Shown: positions 4,419-55,105 of the stretch, piece after piece
Position numbering within the stretch: the stretch's first letter is position 1
How the letters are laid out: each line of letters opens with the position of its first letter
NCBI GenBank assembly: GCA_002269645.1
Contig: NIVC01000662.1
Span: 256,809-320,808 of the forward strand
Direction: 5' to 3'
DNA length: 64,000 bases
Source: Macrostomum lignano
Taxonomy: Eukaryota
The notes under the pieces: model-generated
Databases searched by the model: none
Told to the model about the DNA's origin: nothing
The model's input: only the letters and a program-made list of their open reading frames with translations
Translations under genes and position numbers: made by a program

Positions 4419-7400
4419 TCAACTGCTATTGCTGGTCGGGCTGTCGCTATTGTTGTCGGACTCAACGGCGGAGGCTTCGGCAACTGGCCGGAGGGCGTCC
4501 AGCTCCGAGTACAAGAAGCTGCGCAGCCGTTCTAGGTACTGAGGAAACATTTCAATATCGTTGTGGCCAGCGCCCACAACCCACAGCGGGTCCACTGGCT
4601 TTGGCAAGCGTTCGTAGATTGTCAGGCCGTGAGCGAAGTCAATCACTTCATCGTCTGTGCCGTGTATCACTAGGCAGGGCGACTGGATCCGAGGCGCCTT
4701 CTCGATGCTGCTCAAATGGTTATTGTTATAGCGGCTGGGTTGCAGACAGCTGGCACAGCTGGTCAGATTTAGGTTCATTCACCATGTCTAATCACTGCTC
4801 ATTCACCATGTCTAATCACTGCTCATTCAACATGTCTAATCACTGCTCATTCACCATGTCTAATCACTGCTCATTCACCATGTCTAATCACTGCTCATTC
4901 ACCATGTCTAATCACTGCTCATTCACCATGTCTAATCACTGCTCATTCACCATGTCTAATCACTGCTCATTCAACATGTCTAATCACTGCTCATTCACAA
5001 TGTCTGATCACTGCTCATTCACAATGTCTGATCACTGCTCATTCACAATGTCTGATCACTACTCATTCACTATGTCTAATCACTGCTCATTCACAATGTC
5101 TAATCACTAATCACACTAATCACATGTCTAATCACAATGATCAATCACACTGCTCACTCACAATGATCAAATCACACTGCTCACTCACAATGATCAATCA
5201 CACTGCTCACTCACAATGATCAAATCACACTGCTCACTCACAATGATCAATCACACTGCTCACTCACAATGATCAAATCACACTGCTCACTCGCAATGAT
5301 CAATCACACTGCTCAGTCACAATGATCAATCACACTGCTCACTCACAATGATCAAATCACACTGCTCACTCGCAATGATCAATCACACTGCTCAGTCACA
5401 ATGATCAATCACACTGCTCACTCACAATTATCAATCACACTGCTCACTCACAAATATAAATCATACTGCTCAGTCACAATGATAAATCATACTGCTCACT
5501 CGCAATGATCAATCACACTGCTCACTCACAATGATCAATCACACTGCTCACTCGCAATGATCAATCAAACTGCTCACTCACAATGATCAATCACACTGCT
5601 CACTCACAATGATCAATCAAACTGCTCACTCGCAATGATCAATCAAACTGCTCACTCACAATGATCAATCAAACTGCTCACTCGCAATGATCAATCACAC
5701 TGCTCACTCACAATGATCAATCACACTGCTCACTCGCGATGATCAATCACACTGCTCAGTGACAATGATCAATCACACTGCTCACTCGCAATGATCAATC
5801 ACACTGCTCAGTGACAATGATCAATCACACTGCTCACTCACAATGATCAATCAAACTGCTCACTCGCAATGATCAATCACACTGCTCAGTGACGATGATC
5901 AATCACACTGCTCACTCGCGATGATCAATCACACTGCTCACTCGCGATGATCAATCACACTGCTCAGTCACAATGATCAATCACACTGCTCAGTCACAAT
6001 GATCAATCAATCACACTGCTCACTCACAATGATTAATCACACTGCTCACTCACAATGATCAATCACACTGCTCACTCACAATGATCAATCACACTGCTCA
6101 CTCACAATGATCAATCACACTGCTCACTCACAATGATCAATCACACTGCTCACTCACAATGATCAATCACACTGCTCACTCGCAATCAGCCACTCACTTA
6201 GGAAACGGATCGAAGAACCAGGTTCGCTGAGTCTCTGGAAAGGCAACCCGCATGCCGGACATTAGCGGGCTGTGCAATATAACTCCGGCCACTTTATACC
6301 GGGCAGCCAAGTCAACAGTTGGCACAGTGCCAATGGACTGGCCGTACAGTATAATACTCTCGGGCTGCAGTTTGTACCGGGTGAGCAGCTGGTTCCAGGC
6401 GCACTCCATATCGGCGTACAGATTCTTTTCCAGCGGCCGGCCAGTGCTGGCGCCGTAGCCGGAATAATCGTAGCCGAACACATTGACATTGAGCCGACGG
6501 CCCAAGCCAATAAAGAAGCTGCTCATCTGGCCCAGATCGACTGCGTTGCCGTGTGAGAATAGCAGGGTGAATCGGGAGCGAGGATTCACTTTGGCCATCA
6601 TGCAGGCGATGTTGTTGCCGCGAGCGGTCGGGGCCAGGAATACCTGCGTTGTGTTCAGTCATGGGTGAGGGCAACAGTAGTACAGCATGCACTTTAGGCG
6701 TTGCTATTTAAAATTTGTTAGACACGAGCAATAAAGCTACCTATTTGACAATAAAGCTACCTGTCAGGCAATAAAGCTACCTGTTAGACAATAAAGCTAC
6801 CTGTTAGACAATAAAGCTAACTGTCAGACAATAAAGCTACCTGTTAGACAATAAAGCTAACTGTCAGACAATAAAGCTACCTGTTAGACAATAAAGCTAA
6901 CTGTCAGACAATAAAGCTACCTGTTAGACAATAAAGCTACCTGTTAGACAATAAAGCTACCTGTTAGACAATAAAGCTAACTGAGACAATAAAGCTACCT
7001 GTTAGACAATAAAGCTAACTGTCAGACAATAAAGCTACCTGTTAGACAATAAAGCTAACTGTCAGACAATAAAGCTACCTGTTAGACAATAAAGCTACCT
7101 GTCAGACAATAAAGCTACCTGTTAGACAATAAAGCTACCTGTTAGACAATAAAGCTACCTGTTAGACAATAAAGCTAACTGTCAGACAATAAAGCTACCT
7201 GTTAGACAATAAAGCTACCTATTAGACAATAAAGCTACCTGTTAGACAATAAAGCTACCTGTTTGACAATAAAGCTACCTGTTAGACAATAAAGCTAACT
7301 GTTAGACAATAAAGCTACCTGTTAGACAATAAAGCTACCTGTTAGACAATAAAGCTAACTGTCAGACAATAAAGCTACCTGTTAGACAATAAAGCTACCT

Positions 7401-10526: not shown

Positions 10527-13035
10527 TTTGCATGCACTTGTGTTTGATCCATCTGCTAAGAATTTAGTCTATTTAGTCTATGGTTGAAACCATATATATG
10601 ATAATTGGTGCAAGCTCAAGAAGAGCCCTTCTTTTATTCTTGAGCAAATATACGCCCGCTGGCATCTTCACGTCAAGCAACTGATCTCGTGTCTGTTTCT
10701 ACGGTGTCCCAAACAAAACATGGCGACGAGGATGGGATTTGAGCGTCTTTGAGCGTCTTGAGTGCAGGGATAACATACCCAGTCAAGAATCCAATCATTT
10801 CTGCTCCAATTGTTCCAGTTCTAAAGCAGGAGGGATCTGCCAGACCCATTCGCTTATGTGGAGATTATTCTCTCACCTTGAATCGCATCATTGATGCCGA
10901 CAAGTACAAGTGCCAGAGCCGAAAGACAAGGACCAACTGCGTAGCGTATTGTGCACCTTCAGACATTATGGCGTGTTCTGCAAAAATTTCTCAATGATTG
11001 CACGGCCTCTGTACACACTTCTGAAGAAAGGAGTACACTGGTGTTGGAAGAATGAGCATTCAGCTGCATTTGAGAATCTGAGGACCATGATTGCCGGAGG
11101 AGCCATTACAGCGTACGACATGAGGAAGCCGTTGTACTTAACATGTGACGCCTCGAAGGATGGCTTGGGCTACGTCCTGTCCCATGACAGAGCACAAAGG
11201 CAAGTGGTTTGGCTCGGTAGTCGGGTACTGACTCCAGCTGAAAGCAACTACGCAAACATCGAGAAGGAGGCATTGGCTATTGTGGAAGGCGTAAAATATT
11301 TCCACCAATTTCTCGCTGGCCGCAAGTTCACCATCGTCTCAGACCATCGTCCGCTCCAATTCATATTCAATCAGAACAAAGTGTCAGAAAGAGTGTCCGC
11401 TAGACTGCAACGTTGGGCACTCCTGCTGCGAGCGTATGACTACGAGATTGTCTATGCCAAGGGTGACACTATGCATGCCGCGGACACATTGTCAAGACTT
11501 CCACTAGCAGGACAGCAAAAGGATGCGAGGATCAGCCTGCTTGATGTTAATGCACTGGATAGATTCTGGAATTCAGAGCAACTGTTGAATCGAATCGCAC
11601 GTACCAACGACTCCAAACTGAATCTGCTCAAGACGTACATACAAAAGGAATGGCCTTCCTACATTCCGTCAACAATGTTGCCCTATTCTCGAGGAAAATG
11701 GGAATACACCATCCAAAATGGGATCATTTTCAAGGGACTTCGAATCGTTCTGCCCACTAGCTTGAGGACCGAGATCCTGCAAATGCTGCACGAAGATCAT
11801 CCCGGGATTGTGAGAATGGTACGCCTAGCACGGCAATACTTCTGGTGGCCCGAGATAGACGCACAAGTTAATGCGTTCGTACAACGATGTGTACAATGTC
11901 AGCTTCACGCCAGAAAGAGAGTCAATGCTAACTTGTCCTCGTGGTCGGACGCGCAGAATTTCTTTGAAAGAGTTCACGTTGATATTGCAACATTTAAAGG
12001 TCGCAGACTTCTGGTGATGGTCGACGCCTTTTCAAAATGGGTCGACGTTTAACATGTGAACTCAATGACGGCTTCATCAATTGTTGCCGCAAGCAGACAA
12101 ACATTCAAGTACACTGGATTACCCAAGTCCATAGTCACGGATAACTGTGGATCGTTCGTTGCTGAGGAGTTCTCCAAGTTTCTGAAAGACAATGGTGTCG
12201 AACACGTCTGCACACCCCCAGGACACCATCAGTCCAATGGCCAGTTCGAGAGGGTCATAGAAGAACTGAAGTTTTATCTGCGTAAGATGAAAGCCAACGC
12301 GGACCTCTCTGCCTTAGATTGGCACATTGCGGGATTTTGTCTCTTCCAGAACACTACACCTCATTGCAACGGATCAATACCAGCTCTACTGATCTTTCAG
12401 CAGTTGCCAAGGACACGTTTGTGTTTGTCCGCCACTTGCACTGAGTGGTCGAGGCCAAGTCAGCAGCCAACTCCCGTGTTCATTTGAGTGGAGCACAAGG
12501 AGGAGCGTTTCCCTACTGAGCTGAAGTTTGCCGTTGGTTCTAATACATTTAGGGAGGCACAGGGCAGACTCGTTCATTGGTCAGACATTCAAGCTTATAC
12601 GGACCAGCTACTGGTGGCTGATTCGAAGCCACCAGATTCAAAACTTACAGAGGTCAATCCAGCCCTCAGTGAGACCGTCACTACACCACCCAATACCACC
12701 AGTCAGATCCAGTTAGGACCATTGCCATCCGGCGCCCAAGAACTCCATTGGAGTGTACGGGTTAGTCGACCACCTGATCGGCTTGTCTACAAGTGATTCT
12801 TTACAATGCATGACAGTCTTCTTTTGGCATTGGTGGGGTGTTACATATTTGCATGCACTTGTGTTTGATCCATCTGCTAAGAATTTAGTCTATGGTTGAA
12901 ACCATATATATGATAATTGGTGCCAGCTCAAGAAGAGCCTCTACCCTTCTTTTATTCTTGAGAAAATAGCCTGCTGGCATCTTCACGTCAAGCAATGGAT
13001 CTCGTGTCTATTTCTATGGTGTCCCAAACAAAACA
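10527..13035 (+). mobile_element. Ty3/Gypsy LTR retrotransposon, internally deleted, non-autonomous
   Basis: The 3' LTR spans 12839-13035 (TGTT...AACA) and is preceded by the purine-rich tract tggtgggg. The 5' LTR spans about 10527-10720 and lacks the first ~9 bp. PBS tggcgacgagga at 10721. Only RT-start, RNase H and integrase coding sequence lies between the LTRs. Confidence 0.92.
10749..12796 (+). pseudogene. Gypsy pol remnant: RT N-terminus, RNase H and integrase, with premature stops
   Basis: SAPIVPVLK...IRLCGDYSLTLN (RT start); LTCDASKDGLGYVL, NYANIEKEALAIV, SDHRPL (RNase H); LHEDHPG...RCVQC (HHCC); RVHVDI, IVTDN, SNGQFER (DDE). ORFs 10910, 12056 and 12488 share one frame separated by in-frame stops. 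Confidence 0.92.
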
Positions 13036-22429: not shown

Positions 22430-32375
<9,946 letters not shown>

Positions 32376-34660: not shown

Positions 34661-35400
34661 TCAGTCCGAACGGCCCCGCCAGCCTCGCCTGCAGACTCTT
34701 TCGCGTCTCCAACGCGACCACTTGCAGACGCCGGAGCAGCAGTCTTTGTCCCGTCTGCAGCTCTGGCGGCGTGGCTTGCAGGAGCGCTTGCGCCTGCAGA
34801 CTCGCTCACGTGACCTAAAGGACCACTTGCAGACTCCGGAGCAGCAGTCTTTGTCCCGTCTGCAGCTCTGACGACGTGGCTTGCAGGAGCGCTTGCGCCT
34901 GCAGACTCGCTCACGTGACCTGAACGACCACTTGCAGACGCCGGAGCAGCAGTCTTTGTCCCGTCTGCAGCTCTGGCGGTGCTCCTGACACGAGCTCACG
35001 CACCTGCCTCTTCGACAGTCGCCGGTGCAGCAGCGTCGCCACGGACGGTCGTCGTCGCATCGCTCGCCGTCGCGCCTGCAAGCGTCTGCGGGGAGTTCGG
35101 GACAGGTTTGATAGCAAGCAATCAGAATAGCTCAGGAACTCAATGAAGGCAAACCGGTGACGCTTCAGGTAAACCTCTTCAGCTGAAGCAACCAATCACA
35201 ATAATCCCTGAGCCAGAAAGACTCAGCAATGTTTCAGGACAGATGCACAGAGACATCAAACCAGAACCAGTGCGGCTTCAGAAAATAATCAAGGAAAGGT
35301 GAGAAAAGCTCCTCACAGCGGAACACAGCGCAGTGAACTCACCAGTGCAACAGATCAGTACGGCTGCCATCGCGGCCAGGTAAATCAGAGTGCCTCTCAT
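34661..35400 (-). CDS. Secreted poly-knottin (ICK) precursor A, 160 aa, 4 knots
   Basis: Exon 1 35400-35343 (MRGTLIYLAAMAAVLICCT, phase-1 donor GTGAGT); exon 2 35085-34661. One C-x6-C-x8-CC-x3-C-x4-C knot plus three C-x6-C-x5-CC-x3-C-x10-C knots. TATAAAA at about 35471-35477. Confidence 0.9.
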
Positions 35401-35874: not shown

Positions 35875-36700
35875 ACCGTTCCAGAAACCCGACTGAATCC
35901 TTGCAGAAACCCCACCGAATCGTTCAGAAACCCCACCGAATCATTCCAGAAACCCCACCGAATCCTTCCAGAAACGCCACTGAATCCTTCCAGAAACCCG
36001 ACTGAATCCTTGCAGAAACCCCACCGAATCGTTCAGAAACCCCACCGAATCGTTCCAGAAACCCCACCGAATCCTTCCAAAAACACCACTGAATCCTTCC
36101 AGAAACCCCACCGAATCGTTCCAGAAACACCACTGAATCCTTCCAGAAACCCCACTAAATCCTTCCAGAAACACCACTGAATCCTTCCAGAAACCCCGCC
36201 TAATCCTTCCAGAAACCCCGCCTAATCCTTCCAGAAACCCCACCGAATCCTTCCAGAAACCCCACCGAATCCTTCCAGAAACCCCACTAAATCCTTCCAG
36301 AAACACCACTGAATCCTTCCAGAAACCCCGCCTAATCCTTCCAGAAACCCCACCGAATCCTTCCAGAAACCCCACCGAATCCTTCCAGAAACCCCACTAA
36401 ATCCTTCCAGAAACACCACTGAATCCTTCCAGAAACCCCGCCTAATCCTTCCAGAAACCCCGCCTAATCCTTCCAGAAACCCCACCGAATCCTTCCAGAA
36501 ACCCCACCGAATCCTTCCAGAAACCCCACTAAATCCTTCCAGAAACACCACTGAATCCTTCCAGAAACCCCGCCTAATCCTTCCAGAAACCCCACTAAAT
36601 CCTTCCAGAAACACCACTGAATCCTTCCAGAAACCCCGCCTAATCCTTCCAGAAACCCCGCCTAATCCTTCCAGAAACCCTACCGAATCCTTCCTGAAAC
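35875..36700 (+). repeat. 22-bp minisatellite upstream of precursor A (left arm of the inverted repeat)
   Basis: cccaccgaatccttccagaaac, period 22. Confidence 0.95.
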
Positions 36701-37005
36701 CTTACTTCGGAGTATGATGCCACTCTGCCGTTGCTCCCAGCTACTTACTTATTGAGAAAAAATTGAGGACAATGAGGATTCAAAGTCTCAATAGAAATTG
36801 GAGCTCAGGCAGTCAAATTAGTATTACGAGCGCTCGTAGTAGTATTTCAGTAGTTTCAGTCGTATTTTTAGAATTGTGGATTTTAGGTACTCCCAGCTGA
36901 ACCCCTCTTCCGCGCCAGCCCAAGCGCCAAACTTTTGTTTCTTTCCTCGCCTGGTGTTTCAGCCCAAAGCTGTCTGCCAGCCATGTACATTTCAGGGGCG
37001 CTGGG

Positions 37006-38849: not shown

Positions 38850-39280
38850 GTTCAGTGGGGTTTCAGGAAGAATTCGGTGGGGTTTCAGGAAGGATTCGGT
38901 GGGGTTTCAGGAAGGATTCGGTGGGGTTTCTGGAAGGATTCGGTGGGGTTTCTGGAAGGATTCGGTGGGGTTTGTGGAAGGATTCGGTGGGGTTTCTGGA
39001 AGGATTCGGTGGGGTTTCTGGAACGATTCGATGGGTTTTCTGAAAGGATTCGTTAAGGTTTCTGGAAGGATTCGGTGGGGTTTCTGGAATGGAAGGATTC
39101 GGTGGGGTTTCTGGAAGGATTCGGTGGGGTTTCTGGAAGGATTCGATGGGGTTTCTAAAACGATTCAGTGGGGTTTCTGGAAGGATTCGGTGGGGTTTCA
39201 GGAAGGATTCGGTGGGGTTTCTGGAAGGATTCGGTGGGGTTCCTGGAAGAATTCGGTGGGGTTTCTGGAACGGTTGAGTG
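38850..39280 (-). repeat. 22-bp minisatellite upstream of precursor B (inverted copy of 35875-36700)
   Basis: gtttctggaaggattcggtggg is the reverse complement of the left-arm unit. Confidence 0.95.
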
Positions 39281-39666: not shown

Positions 39667-39673
39667 TATAAAA
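39667..39673 (+). promoter_or_regulatory. TATA box of knottin precursor B, conserved across paralogs
   Basis: gtctataaaagcgat lies about 70-85 bp upstream of the ATG in A, B, C and E; it reads CATAAAA in D and TATAAA in the orphan copy. Confidence 0.75.
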
Positions 39674-39743
39674 GCGATCGCATCTTGATTAGAGCAGACT
39701 ACACCAAACCTCAGAGCAATATTTACTTGACCGACTTGAAAAC

Positions 39744-41008
39744 ATGAGAGGCACTCTGATTTACCTGGCCGCGATGGCAGCCGTACTGATCTGTTGCACT
39801 GGTGAGTTCACTGCGCTGTGTTCCGCTGTGAGGAGCTTTTCTCACCTTTCCTTGATTATTTTCTGAAGCCGCACTGGTTCTGGTTTGAAGTCTCTGTGCA
39901 TCTGTCCTGAAACATTGCTGAGTCTTTTTGGCTCAGGGATTATTGTGATTGGTTGCTTCAGCTGAAGAGGTTTACCTGAAGCGTCACCGGTTTGCCTTCA
40001 TTGAGTTCCTGAGCTATTCTGATTGCTTGCTATCAAACCTGTCCCGAACTCCCCGCAGACGCTTGCAGGCGCGACGGCGAGCCATGCGACGACGACCGTC
40101 CGTGGCGACGCTGCTGCACCGGCGACTGTCGACGAGGCAGGTGCGTGAGCTCGTGTCAGGAGCACCGCCAGAGCTGCAGACGGGACAAAGACTGCTGCTC
40201 CGGCGTCTGCAAGTGGTCGTTCAGGTCACGTGAGCGAGTCTGCAAGCGCAAGCGCTCCTGCAAGCCACGCCGCCAGAGCTGCAGGCGGGACAAAGACTGC
40301 TGCTCCGGCGTCTGCAAGTGGTCGTTCAGGTCACGTGAGCGAGTCTGCAGGCGCAAGCGCTCCTGCAAGCCACGCCGCCAGAGCTGCAGACGGGACAAAG
40401 ACTGCTGCTCCGGCGTCTGCAAGTGGTCGTTCAGGTCACGTGAGCGAGTCTGCAGGCGCAAGCGCTCCTGCAAGCCACGCCGCCAGAGCTGCAGGCGGGA
40501 CAAAGACTGCTGCTCCGGCGTCTGCAAGTGGTCGTTCAGGTCACGTGAGCGAGTCTGCAAGCGCAAGCGCTCCTGCAAGCCACGCCGCCAGAGCTGCAGG
40601 CGGGACAAAGACTGCTGCTCCGGCGTCTGCAAGTGGTCGTTCAGGTCACGTGAGCGAGTCTGCAGGCGCAAGCGCTCCTGCAAGCCACGCCGCCAGAGCT
40701 GCAGGCGGGACAAAGACTGCTGCTCCGGCGTCTGCAAGTGGTCGTTCAGGTCACGTGAGCGAGTCTGCAGGCGCAAGCGCTCCTGCAAGCCACGCCGCCA
40801 GAGCTGCAGGCGGGACAAAGACTGCTGCTCCGGCGTCTGCAAGTGGTCGTTCAGGTCACGTGAGCGAGTCTGCAGGCGCAAGCGCTCCTGCAAGCCACGC
40901 CGCCAGAGCTGCAGACGGGACAAAGACTGCTGCTCCGGCGTCTGCAAGTGGTCGCGTTGGAGGCGCGAAAGAGTCTGCAGGCGAGGCTGGCGGGGCCGTT
41001 CGGACTGA
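39744..41008 (+). CDS. Secreted poly-knottin (ICK) precursor B, 335 aa, 9 knots
   Basis: Exon 1 39744-39801; exon 2 40059-41008. N-terminal knot plus 8 copies of a 105-bp/35-aa unit SCKPRRQSCRRDKDCCSGVCKWSFRSRERVCRRKR. Confidence 0.92.
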
Positions 41009-45416: not shown

Positions 45417-45474
45417 ATGAAGGCCACTCTGATTTTCCTTGCCGCAATGGCGGCAGTGTTGATCTGCTGCACTG
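45417..45474 (+). pseudogene. Orphan signal-peptide exon of a knottin precursor (exon 2 lost)
   Basis: MKATLIFLAAMAAVLICCT + G|GTGAGT with an intact promoter. The intron matches copy E up to cagcctgtgcg (about 45531) and then becomes unrelated sequence. Confidence 0.85.
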
Positions 45475-46739: not shown

Positions 46740-47452
46740 TCACTTAAAGCTGCCCCGCCAGTCCCGCTTGCAAACTCGCTCACATAGTTTGCAGTAGCCC
46801 TTGCCCTTGCAGCCTGGGTCAGGTGACCTAAAGGACCACTCGCAAACACCGGAGCAGCAGTCTTTGTCCCGTCTGCAGCTCTGGCGGTGCTTCCTGCAGG
46901 AACGCTTGCGCTTGCAGACTTGCTCACGTAGTTTCCTAGAGCACTTGCCGTCGCAGCCTGAGACATGTGGCCTAAAGGACCACTCGCAAGCACCGGAGCA
47001 GCAGTCTTTGTCCCGTCTGCAGCTCTGGCGGTGCTCCTGACACGAGCTCACGCACCTGCCTCGTCGACAGTCGCCGGTGCAGCAGCGTCGCCACGGACGG
47101 TCGTCGTCGCATGGCTCGCCGTCGCGCCTGCAAGCGTCTGCGGGGAGTTCGGGACAGGTTTGATAGCAAGCAATCAGAATAGCTCAGGAACTCAATGAAG
47201 GCAAACCGGTGACGCTTCAGGTAAACCTCTTCAGCTGAAGCAACCAATCACAATAATCCCTTAGCCAAAAAGACTCAGCAATGTTTCAGGACAGATGCAC
47301 AGAGACTTCAAACCAGAACCAGTGCGGCTTCAGAAAATAATCAAGGAAAGGTGAGAAAAGCTCCTCACAGCGGAACACAGCGCAGTGAACTCACCAGTGC
47401 AACAGATCAGTACGGCTGCCATCGCGGCCAGGTAAATCAGAGTGCCTCTCAT
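46740..47452 (-). CDS. Secreted poly-knottin precursor C, 151 aa, 3 knots, two with extra cysteines
   Basis: Exon 1 47452-47395; exon 2 47137-46740. Knots 2 and 3 have extended loops (CEWSFRPHVSGCDGKCSRKLREQVC; CEWSFRSPDPGCKGKGYCKLCERVC). Confidence 0.88.
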
Positions 47453-49084: not shown

Positions 49085-49695
49085 TCAGTTCGAGCGGCCC
49101 CGCCAGTCCCGCTTGCAGATTCGCTCACGTGACCTGAACGACCACTTGCAGACGCCGGAGCAGCAGTCTTTGTCCCGCCTGCAGCTCTGACGAAGTGGCT
49201 TACAGGAGCGCTTGCGCCTGCAGACTCGCTCACGTGACCTAAAGGACCACTTGCAGACTCCGGAGCAGCAGTCTTTGTCCCGTCTGCAGCTCTGGCGGTG
49301 CTCCTTGCAGGAACGGTTGCGCTTGCAGACTCGCTCACGTGACCTGAACGACCACTTGCAGACTCCGGAGCAGCAGTCTTTGTCCCGTCTGCAGCTCTGG
49401 CGGTGCTCCTGACACGAGCTCACGCACCTGCCTCGTCGACAGTCGCCGGTGCAGCAGCGTCGCCATGGACGGTCGTTGTCGCATCGGTCGCCTTCGCGCC
49501 TGCAAGCGTCTGTGGGATGTTGGGAAAGAATTTTTGGTACGGGTACACGCAATCCAGATATGGTCGTTCACGTCACGTGAGCGAGTCTGCTACAGCGTAC
49601 CCGAATTTCTTTTTAGAGCAAAGCAAAGTGAACTCACCAATGCAGCAGATCAACACTGCCGCCATTGCGGCAAGGAAAATCAGAGTGGCCTTCAT
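49085..49695 (-). CDS. Secreted poly-knottin precursor D, 160 aa, 4 knots
   Basis: Exon 1 49695-49638 (MKATLIFLAAMAAVLICCI); exon 2 49509-49085. Confidence 0.9.
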
Positions 49696-51081: not shown

Positions 51082-51668
51082 ATGAAGGCCACTCTGATTT
51101 TCCTTGCCGCAATGGCTGCAGTGTTGATCTGCTGCACTGGTGAGTTCACTTTGCTTTGCTCTAAAGAGAAATTCAGATACGCTGTTCAGCCTGTGCGTGT
51201 GTACCCATACCCAACATTCTTTCCCAACATCCCACAGACGCTTGCAGGCGCGAAGGCGACCGATGCGACAACGACCGTCCGTGGCGACGCTGCTGCAGTG
51301 GCGACTGTCGACGAGGCAGGTGCGTGAGCTCGTGTCAGGAGCACCGCCAGAGCTGCAGACGGGACAAAGACTGCTGCTCCGGAGTCTGCGAGTGGTCGTT
51401 CAGGTCACGTGAGCGAGTCTGCAAGCGCAACCGTTCCTGCAAGGAGCACCGCCAGCGCTGCAGACGGGACAAAGACTGCTGCTCCGGAGTCTGCGAGTGG
51501 TCGTTCAGGACACGTGAGCGAGTCTGCAAGCGCAAGCGCAACCGTTCCTGCAAGGAGCACCGCCAGCGCTGCAGACGGGACAAAGACTGCTGCTCCGGAG
51601 TCTGCGAGTGGTCGTTCAGGACACGTGAGCGAGTCTGCAAGCGCGACTGGCGGGGCCGCTCGAACTGA
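51082..51668 (+). CDS. Secreted poly-knottin precursor E, 162 aa, 4 knots
   Basis: Exon 1 51082-51139; exon 2 51238-51668; TATAAAA at 50995-51001. Confidence 0.9.
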
Positions 51669-53369: not shown

Positions 53370-55105
53370 ATGCCGAGAAAATGCAGCGTCATTTTCTGTT
53401 GTGCAAACTACAATAGTAACCGTGATCGGAATGTTGCAGTATTTTCATTTCCTAAAGATGCAACTGAACGAGAGGCTTGGCGACTGTCTCTGCCTAATCA
53501 ACTGACGGTAAGACTTTCTTCAAATGTGCTTTGTGAATCAGATTTACCCTGGCCACATGAATTCATTAACAATTCTGTTGTTGTTTAGACCGTGACAGAC
53601 TACATGGGCGTGTGTGCTAAGCACTGGCCTCAAGATGCACCAATGATAAAAAAGGAAGAATGGTATATGTTCCCCATTTATTTTGTTGTCTAGCGGGCAA
53701 AAGCAAGAGGTGTCTCGTTTATTGACCGAGGCGAAGCGTGCGAAGCCTCGGTCAATGATCGAGACACCTCTTGCTTTTGGCCCTAGACAGCTGAATGAGT
53801 GGGGAATATGATATGTATCCCCCGTTCGTTGTCTATGGTTGTTGTCTCGAATTTATCAGCCCGCGGGGCAGCGGGAAATAAATGATTTATTCACCTAGGG
53901 AAATAAATGAAAACATGCGTCACATAGACACTCGCCCGGGGCAAAAGCTACATCCACCATCAGTTTTCGACGGAGTCCCGCAGTCCTGCCTCGTTCAAAC
54001 ACAAGGTTTGTGAAGTTCTACTGCTCAAATATTTGCACTCCATCAAATAGGGTCGAAACGAAACACTAAGGTGCGTGCTTGGATATTGCAGTGCATGCCA
54101 GTCGACATGCTGAGGGAAGGGGCGTGCTGCTGTCCGAACGATGCCTTTTCCAAGATGAACTAGTAGAATTTCGAGAGCGTGACACGCTGCCATCGTGGAC
54201 TGAATTCCGAGCATCCATTCACTGTTCAAACGTCATCAAAGCACATCAGCTTATTGTTACCATTGTTCAAGAGGAGGTAAAATATTCAGAAAATATTCGG
54301 CATCTTCTCGTTAAGCGCCAATGCCGAAATGGTTCTGCGAGTTTTCGTTTCACCAAACTATTCCGTGCGATGCTTTCGGTTACACTCACCAGTTGCGGTT
54401 CGAGATCTGCTTGGATTTCAACCAACATTAAAGTATTGGTCGCAACTTGAAGCTATCATAAATCGTTGTAAAAACTCTACAGTGGACGTCGAAAGTGAGG
54501 TGAGGGCATTATCTAAGAACCTTTCTATTGCCTTTAACCACGATGGAGTTGTACCGGACACATCGGTTACATTCATCCTGAAGCTACTCGAGTTCGCCAC
54601 AACGCACCCAAACAATCGACGATACGACATTGCCACTATGCGCCAATCTGCTTTGCTTTACCTGATTAGCAGTTCTGCATACGCGCATGCACAGACGCTC
54701 CTTCCTTTGCCCCACCAACGCACATTACGCACTCAGTTGGCTGGTCTAGGAGAGATTGGCACTGAAAATGATGCACACGAGATCGTAAAGGTCGCATTTG
54801 CCAAACTGAAACCGCAGCAGAAGTCTTGTGTGTTGATTTTCGATGAAATGTATGTCCAGCCATCGATTCGCTATCGGTGCCAACATCTGCTCGGCCAAGC
54901 GTCAGACAATCATAACAAAACTGCTCGAACAGTGCTCGCAATAATGTTGAAGCCATTGTTCGGCGGTAAGCCATTTGTTCTAAGGCTGATACCGATTTTT
55001 CTTCTTTCCGCCGACTTTTTGTACCATCAGCTTCGAAAGTGCATTCAACTCGTCAATCAACATGGAGGCCTATTTATCATGGTCAGCTCTTGTCCCGTTC
55101 TGTGA
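53370..55105 (+). pseudogene. THAP zinc finger plus P-element transposase, disrupted and C-terminally truncated
   Basis: MPRKCSVIFCCANY...VFSFPKD...AWRLSLPNQLT |intron 53508-53588| TVTDYMGVCAKHWP (C2CH). PPSVF follows an insertion. NRRY...SSSAY...LPLPHQRTLR...CVLIFDEMYV in ORF 54329..55105. Confidence 0.85.
53666..53812. repeat. Long imperfect palindrome (foldback insertion) inside the P element
   Basis: aaaagcaagaggtgtctcg...ttgaccgaggc [gaagcgtgcgaa] gcctcggtcaa...cgagacacctcttgctttt; outer arms ttccccat...tgtctag / ctagaca...gtggggaa. Confidence 0.9.

Follow-up and report, generated by a model that had tools for sequence, protein, structure and literature searches.

The SCREPs, which are secreted proteins with cysteine-rich repeats, combine a signal peptide with tandem, independently folding disulfide-rich domains joined by short linkers (PMC6262176), and in the ScrepYard catalogue linkers containing KK, KR, RK or RR are read as convertase sites, with 2153 such proteins set aside as processed (PMC9885460). 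The four-domain precursor of the sea-anemone peptide Ugr 9a-1 is cleaved into separate toxins (PMC6262176), and the bivalent double-knot toxins DkTx, Hi1a and the remipede Xt3a carry two tandem inhibitor cystine knot (ICK) domains on a short uncut linker (PMC9950431, PMC13172734). In platyhelminths, the motif C6-C7-CC-4-C-9-C-x2-C6-C5-CC-3-C-4-C of the UPF0506 family (PF11703) likewise describes a double knot, its linker being 2 residues long (PMC8400842). Here we analyze a stretch of 64,000 nucleotides from the free-living flatworm Macrostomum lignano (assembly GCA_002269645.1, contig NIVC01000662.1, positions 256,809 to 320,808 of the forward strand), hereafter the window, whose first letter is position 1 in all coordinates below. 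Gene g2 (39744-41008, +) and four paralogues in this window are each predicted to encode 3 to 9 small cystine-knot domains in one very basic secreted chain. We compare them with the systems above, and we weigh the proposal of an initial annotation of g2 that the chain is cut at its multibasic linkers into one double knot and many single knots.

Precursors that release several peptides from one chain are also documented in insects and fungi. Drosophila Baramicin is a single furin-cut precursor with tandem repeats between RXRR sites that yields several peptide classes and has been called a 'protein operon' (PMC8423362). In polypeptide antimicrobial peptide genes such as those of Baramicin and apidaecin, copy number and module content differ between loci (PMC8423362, PMC9246212), and fungi possess Kex2-processed repeat proteins (PMC6339444). 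Our search of the literature on knottins, ICK toxins and antimicrobial peptides in Macrostomum or other flatworms retrieved no report of the gene family described here.

Gene g2 has two exons, of which the second occupies the interval 40059-41008 (+) and is preceded by an AG acceptor at 40057-40058. A TATA box, TATAAAAG, is located at 39667..39674 (+), 70 nt 5' of the g2 ATG; the same box occurs 5' of g1, g3 and g5, and the form CATAAAAG occurs 5' of g4. Exon 1 (39744..39801, +) encodes the signal peptide MRGTLIYLAAMAAVLICCT and ends in phase 1, with only the first base of the codon that follows, at a GTGAGT donor. It is identical in g1 and g3, and its nucleotide identity to exon 1 of g4 and g5 is 83-84%. 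The phase-1 intron (39802..40058, +; GTGAGT...CGCAG) is 99-100% identical to the introns of g1 and g3 and cannot be aligned with those of g4 and g5 (34-39% identity). The family comprises two subfamilies, g1-g3 and g4-g5. Exon 2 encodes, in order, a first knot, the tripeptide VSS, eight repeat knots and a C-terminal tail, and it closes with a TGA stop codon. Knot 1 (40064..40144, +) has the cysteine pattern C6C8CC3C4C and a net charge of about +1, and it is joined to the next knot by the VSS linker (40145..40153, +; codons GTG AGC TCG). The repeat knots are encoded by a 105-nt tandem array at 40165..40954 (+), for which Tandem Repeats Finder reports 7.5 copies with 98% matches. Each repeat unit has 35 residues, namely a 30-residue knot of pattern C6C5CC3C10C and a 5-residue linker. 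The first inter-knot linker, KRKRS (AAG CGC AAG CGC TCC), lies at 40244..40258 (+), and the others follow on the same strand at a spacing of 105 nt, starting at 40349, 40454, 40559, 40664, 40769 and 40874. Two of these seven inter-unit linkers read KRKRS and five read RRKRS, with the codons AAG/AGG CGC AAG CGC TCC. After the last knot, the tail RRGWRGRSD (40979..41005, +) replaces the last linker. The mature chain, consisting of the residues D-A, knot 1, VSS, the eight units and this tail, has 316 residues, nine knots and a net charge of +86.

Three other ways of reading this exon were considered and rejected. The other open frames across the repeat are by-products of a stop-free tandem repeat, and the cysteine frame alone is continuous with the signal-peptide exon; among the repeat's open frames, the cysteine frame is the one whose family matches and fold were examined. 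In-frame alternative splicing that skips units was judged by eye to be unworkable, as the internal GTGAGC and CAG sites stand in different codon phases and their use would shift the frame. A role of knot 1 as an anionic pro-piece neutralizing the cationic repeats does not agree with its net charge of about +1, as compared with +5 to +7 for each unit.

A 26-nt probe taken from the start of exon 2 occurs in five copies in the window, against 0.00 expected from shuffles. All five genes follow one exon-intron plan, in which a GT..AG phase-1 intron separates a signal-peptide exon from an open exon 2, and in each of them we read as a signal peptide an N-terminus of 19-21 residues that has a hydrophobic core and occupies an exon of its own. 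Besides g2, the family includes g1 (34661-35400, -; exon 2 at 34661-35085 and exon 1 at 35343-35400), with knot 1 and three units joined by the linkers RRKRS and RRKRS; g3 (46740-47452, -; exon 2 at 46740-47137 and exon 1 at 47395-47452), with knot 1 and two units joined by KRKRS; g4 (49085-49695, -; exon 2 at 49085-49509 and exon 1 at 49638-49695), with knot 1 and three units joined by KRNRS and RRKRS; and g5 (51082-51668, +; exon 1 at 51082-51139 and exon 2 at 51238-51668), with knot 1 and three units joined by KRNRS and KRKRNRS. The cysteine order C-C-CC-C-C, with loops in the knottin range, is found in all five genes in the two forms given above, C6C8CC3C4C for knot 1 and C6C5CC3C10C for the repeat unit. 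The VSS linker and the first repeat knot (knot 2, CQEHRQSC...) are invariant in five of five genes, knot 2 being a conserved variant that differs from the units after it. The C-terminal tail is likewise kept across the genes; g4 and g5 have KRDWRGRSN, and g3 has KRDWRGSFK. A divergent member is g3, whose units extend to 48 residues with 8 and 9 cysteines through extra CDGKC or CKGKGYCKLC segments in the hairpin loop; with its odd total of 23 cysteines, it represents either a disulfide framework that is new or a copy in decay. Taken together, these features make it very probable that the five loci are real genes for secreted tandem knottins.

The pattern that the initial annotation had described at 40059-41008, a distinct first knot, VSS and 35-residue units, is present at those positions, and the distinct first knot and its non-basic VSS joint to knot 2 do recur in all five genes, down to identical VSS codons. 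The variation in unit number between genes was likewise confirmed, with three units in g1 and eight in g2. Other statements needed to be narrowed. Of the unit endings that had been listed, RRKR and KRKR occur in g2, whereas KRNR belongs only to the paralogues g4 and g5; the length of 35 residues applies to the units of g2 but not to one 37-residue unit of g5, which carries the linker KRKRNRS, nor to the 48-residue units of g3. The statement that every unit ends in a four-basic motif was wrong, because the last unit of each gene ends instead in the RRGWRGRSD or KRDW.. tail.

The five genes constitute a lineage-specific family whose knot string has grown by tandem duplication of the 105-nt unit within the exon and has been kept uniform by unequal exchange or gene conversion. 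The repeat units are very recent copies, with proportions of synonymous differences (pS) of 0.02-0.15, and the number of units differs between the near-identical genes g1 (three) and g2 (eight). Synonymous sites of exon 2 differ by 7-9% between g1/g2 and g4/g5 and by about 14% for g3, and the proportion of nonsynonymous differences (pN) is below pS in all ten pairwise gene comparisons. Since exon 2 is far better kept than the introns, the coding exon has been homogenized, for example by gene conversion confined to the knot exon, or constrained, for example in its nucleotide sequence, or both.

Inverted duplication has also shaped the locus. Genes g1 and g2 form a head-to-head inverted duplication with arms of 1045 nt that are 97% complementary, and g4 and g5 form another with arms of 341 nt (96%). 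The spacer of about 4.3 kb between g1 and g2 contains two inverted arrays of a 22-bp minisatellite (35879-36701 and 38851-39270); each array lies on the upstream side of one gene (ATGs at 35400 and 39744), as part of a large palindromic duplication. An orphan sixth signal-peptide exon of the g4/g5 type, MKATLIFLAAMAAVLICCT, is present at 45417..45474 (+) with a GTGAGT donor and the box CTATAAAG upstream. The start of its intron resembles that of g5, the stretch from there to the 3' end of g3 contains no knot exon, and the whole looks like a truncated gene copy. Within the g4 intron, a 30-nt antisense fragment of a repeat unit (49561-49590, +; translated as WSFTSRERVC) suggests a past rearrangement between copies.

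To examine the fold of the repeat units, we ran AlphaFold2 on the 31-residue unit with an alignment of seven variants encoded in the window. The single-unit model reached a predicted local distance difference test (pLDDT) score of 95.5 and contains a C-terminal beta-hairpin, and its Foldseek search of the PDB gave 23 matches, every one of them a knottin-type fold. The top match is the spinach knottin trypsin inhibitor SOTI-III, with a template-modelling (TM) score on the query, TMq, of 0.87, a root-mean-square deviation of 1.2 Å and a probability of 1.00; omega-atracotoxin, maurocalcin (TM about 0.6), Tst2, nemertide alpha-1 and others follow. The Foldseek E-values are weak (at least 0.1) because the domain has only 31 residues. 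In a model of the four-knot g4 protein the mean pLDDT was 74, with 72-88 in the repeat units, 55-65 in knot 1 and 73-88 in the linkers, and its Foldseek matches were of the same kind as those of the single unit. The models thus support the repeat units being knots, as the initial annotation had proposed.

In Pfam, the family has a weak resemblance to knottins in general. UPF0506 matched the whole g5 protein with 28.3 bits against a cut-off of 23.2 bits, a score summed over three repeats; g1 scored 20.2 bits, single units and the double knot scored 17-19 bits, and only model positions 30-56 of 59 align. The Pfam models for omega-atracotoxin, Toxin_21, Toxin_29, calcine and conotoxins gave 13-20 bits, below their cut-offs of 21-27 bits. 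A word-indexed search of the g1 precursor against 5.8 billion clustered proteins gave no match, and exhaustive phmmer against 1.84 billion representatives gave none at E ≤1e-10, the best E-value being 3e-9, for generic tandem C6C5CC3C arrays. The sequence search of the PDB returned only spurious MyD88 matches (E about 0.3) and no double-knot toxin, an Rfam scan of the window gave no match, and an exact look-up of the exon-2 open reading frame (ORF) found no transcript or contig record.

The central question is whether the basic linkers are processing sites. Runs of four basic residues are confined to the linkers, which in the family total 14 and comprise eight RRKR, three KRKR, two KRNR and one KRKRNR. 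The P1 arginine and the P1' serine are invariant in 14 of 14 inter-unit linkers; the P1 codon shows a synonymous CGC/CGT change, and a [KR]R pair follows Cys6 in 19 of 19 repeat units, the last ones included. The linker KRKRS is kept in the divergent g3 despite the rebuilt loop of the adjacent knot. The best 40 distant phmmer matches among the 1.84 billion representatives are mostly tandem-knottin arrays with a matching cysteine pattern, found in Myxococcota as well as in the foraminifer Bolivina, the gastropod Babylonia and the mite Dinothrombium, and their linkers of 4-6 residues are almost all non-basic, with a lysine plus arginine content of 1-13%. On this comparison the four-basic linker is a derived trait of the flatworm family.

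In the processing model, the signal peptide would direct the chain into the endoplasmic reticulum, where each six-cysteine unit would fold independently. Late in the secretory pathway, the chain would be cut after [KR]-R-[KN]-R by a proprotein convertase of the kexin type, either furin-like or PC1/PC2-like, at a presumed site flanked by the Cys6 of one unit and the Ser-Cys1 of its successor, and a carboxypeptidase would trim the trailing basic residues. Each molecule of n repeat units would give one N-terminal knot1-VSS-knot2 peptide (62 residues, 7.3 kDa, net charge +5 to +6), n-2 identical 31-residue knottins (3717 Da, net charge +7) and one C-terminal knot that keeps or loses its W-R-G tail. 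These computed masses agree with the approximately 7-kDa dimer and 3.6-kDa monomer that had been anticipated for the two main products. From sequence considerations, we regard convertase cleavage at the basic linkers as an evenly balanced proposition. The survival of knot1-VSS-knot2 as a distinct bivalent product lies on the unlikely side, although an undivided N-terminal double knot is credible in view of the UPF0506 double knot with a 2-residue linker in Schistocephalus. The full combination of a double knot plus monomers is, if anything, slightly less likely still. We likewise hold only tentatively, and as a rather doubtful proposal, the complete picture of a mixed-linker knottin rosary, in which the uncut VSS joint would keep a bivalent double knot, the four-basic joints would free monovalent cationic knots, and unequal exchange in the 105-nt array (three units in g1 against eight in g2) would set their ratio; such a tunable product ratio depends on the remaining processing steps being true.

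Other evidence weighs against cleavage, and in the main rival reading the chains stay uncut as intact secreted polycationic multi-knot proteins of the SCREP kind, with identical knots and a charge of up to +86 giving avidity for polyanionic or repetitive targets such as microbial surfaces, mucus, adhesive glycans, the eggshell or granule matrix, or a multimeric receptor. We consider this reading, targets included, possible though not probable. It represents the default of the architecture, because tandem-knottin arrays without basic sites are widespread (Myxococcota, foraminifer, gastropod and mite), and the 5-residue length of the flatworm linker equals that of such arrays. The multibasic linker pattern of the initial annotation is real, but it stands out from the remainder of the chain less than the wording there had suggested. 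Lysine and arginine make up 27-38% of the mature proteins, and 42% of the non-cysteine residues within the knots are basic. When the non-cysteine residues of one unit were shuffled, at least four of five linker residues were basic in 14% of the shuffles (p = 0.14), a strict furin motif arose in 10% and four basic residues in a row arose in 7%, so that linker basicity is not significantly higher than the knot background. Moreover, the units and genes are recent copies (pS ≤0.15), and the repeated motif therefore amounts to only a few independent observations. The linker DNA itself is a slippage-prone (AAGCGC)2-3 hexamer repeat, able to arise and grow by slippage, and the second linker of g5 (51528-51548), with a third hexamer-like copy (AAG CGC AAG CGC AAC CGT), indicates that linker length changes in this way. 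The strict motif R-x-[KR]-R is also incomplete, being found in eight of the 14 linkers as compared with a dibasic pair in all 14. Lysine occupies P4 in six of the 14 (the KRKR, KRNR and KRKRNR forms), and KRNR also lacks a basic P2. Furin weights P4 and P2 heavily, and these are the very positions that vary here (K/R at P4, K/N at P2). The scissile bond is, in addition, pinned between disulfide-bonded cysteines at P5 and P2', and the linkers were modelled with a pLDDT of 73-88 in the four-knot chain. Macrostomum also offers a precedent in Mlig-ap1, a secreted, very Lys/Arg-rich repetitive protein that functions as a large protein (PMC8621496). On the other hand, four basic residues with a P1 arginine and a P1' serine make a good convertase site, and an uncut chain would need protection during its passage through the Golgi; the related arrays avoid basic linkers, and the conserved [KR]R after the last knot would be left with no obvious role.

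The unequal quality of the linkers (from eight RRKR through three KRKR and two KRNR to one KRKRNR) would also fit a partial and heterogeneous processing, in which only the best sites, RRKR, are cut efficiently and a ladder of one-, two- and three-knot products results, the KRNR junction of g4 and g5 staying intact to leave an N-terminal triple knot. LEKTI, a multidomain Kazal inhibitor that furin cuts into single- and multi-domain fragments, provides the model for such an outcome. We regard it as improbable here; kexin-type enzymes for which a plain KR pair suffices would cut all junctions. Finally, the loci might be non-functional, as an untranscribed or decaying repeat family or, in the case of the 8-unit array, as an assembly artefact. 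The search for transcript and protein records was empty, no copy carries a canonical AATAAA up to 350 nt from its stop codon (g4 alone has one, at a distance of 363 nt), g3 has an odd cysteine count, an orphan exon 1 is present at 45417, and the window is full of minisatellites. Nevertheless, five copies with intact frames, splice sites, TATA boxes, signal peptides and every cysteine, a conservation of exon 2 far above that of the introns and a unit model with a pLDDT of 95.5 make this explanation very improbable.

The surroundings of the cluster include several other genes and repeats. Exons of an M13 (neprilysin-like) peptidase at 26286-26789 (-) and 31536-32375 (-) adjoin the knottin genes. 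The latter exon has one significant match, a Macrostomum lignano UniRef protein (E 8.5e-29), with one block of 30/31 identical residues and with near-identity blocks interrupted in a frameshift-like manner, and the introns of this gene contain a 16-bp minisatellite of 1.9 kb (26834-28694), an 18-bp array (29189-29761) and a TCTG microsatellite (30428-30979). An ABHD17-like alpha/beta-hydrolase exon lies at 6197-6601 (-), with a best database identity of 78%. A fragment of a gypsy-type retroelement (RT-RNaseH-integrase), with RNase H, an integrase zinc finger and an integrase core, and a P-element/THAP9-like transposase ORF are found at 10910-12487 (+) and 54329-55105 (+). The minisatellite density of the window is unusually high, with 44 Tandem Repeats Finder rows and many arrays of 0.3-1.9 kb with units of 12-61 bp, and it generates many spurious long ORFs in all frames.

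If the chain is processed, one transcript would give up to seven identical +7 knottins together with a distinct double knot, raising dose and mixing valencies, and the genes would supply cationic knottin scaffolds that are new and very stable, in a laboratory model animal amenable to RNA interference and transgenesis. If it is not processed, a 316-residue, nine-knot chain with a net charge of +86 would stand out among secreted proteins as an unusual polycation. In both cases, the locus illustrates a route by which tandem duplication inside an exon can produce bivalent and multivalent knot peptides, and it displays inverted gene duplication, copy-number change and coding-exon homogenization side by side. 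Given the strongly cationic, knottin-shaped peptides, we speculate that they act in host defence or as ion-channel or protease ligands; their fold neighbours span antimicrobial, channel-ligand and protease-inhibitor classes. Should the rosary reading hold, it would represent the first knottin polyprotein described in a flatworm, according to the literature that we searched, an animal counterpart of the plant multi-knottin precursors, and an unrecognized peptide arsenal for defence or predation in a free-living flatworm.

How, then, do these genes compare with the known systems? Besides the Ugr 9a-1 precursor and the fungal Kex2-processed repeat proteins, the sarafotoxin 'rosary' precursors and the plant TIPTOP and cyclotide multi-knottin precursors also contain numerous copies of one small peptide, cysteine-rich or bioactive, that are released at defined sites. 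Those precursors have spacers or propeptides between the copies or depend on an asparaginyl endopeptidase, whereas in the flatworm chains the five-residue spacer would itself be the site of the cut. SOTI-III, the Mirabilis-type plant knottins and the scorpion calcins are small basic ICK peptides that stand as structural neighbours only, as their identity of 30-40% is almost wholly due to the cysteines and no function can be transferred from them. Baramicin differs in that its peptides are not disulfide-rich knots and that its processing was demonstrated by mass spectrometry, whereas processing of the flatworm chains is inferred.

With the bivalent ICK toxin genes of spiders, the flatworm genes share a common plan, in which a phase-1 intron follows the signal-peptide exon and the last exon holds all knots (PMC13172734), and knot1-VSS-knot2 resembles the double-knot toxins in having two ICK domains on a short linker that lacks a processing site. 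In contrast, the flatworm double knot is only the head of a longer chain, it has no propeptide and its source is not a venom gland; Foldseek comparison with Hi1a and DkTx gave E-values of 1.2-3.5 and TM scores of 0.3-0.4, and there is no sequence relationship. UPF0506 comes from the same phylum and is comparable in arrangement, the flatworm genes reading C6-C8-CC-3-C-4-C-x3-C6-C5-CC-3-C-10-C, but only the second-knot half of its model aligns, and UPF0506 proteins have not been described as long arrays with basic linkers. As for the SCREPs, the flatworm chains resemble them in having a secretion signal, as read from the sequence, and at least two tandem homologous disulfide-rich domains, and they differ in having up to nine knottins, a net charge of up to +86 and both non-basic and four-basic linkers in one chain. 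Tandem cysteine-rich repeats joined by dibasic linkers are a general design that has been catalogued before, and our finding extends a known kind. Particular to the flatworm genes is the combination of strings of up to nine knots, the extreme basicity, the mixed joints within one chain and the free-living flatworm host.

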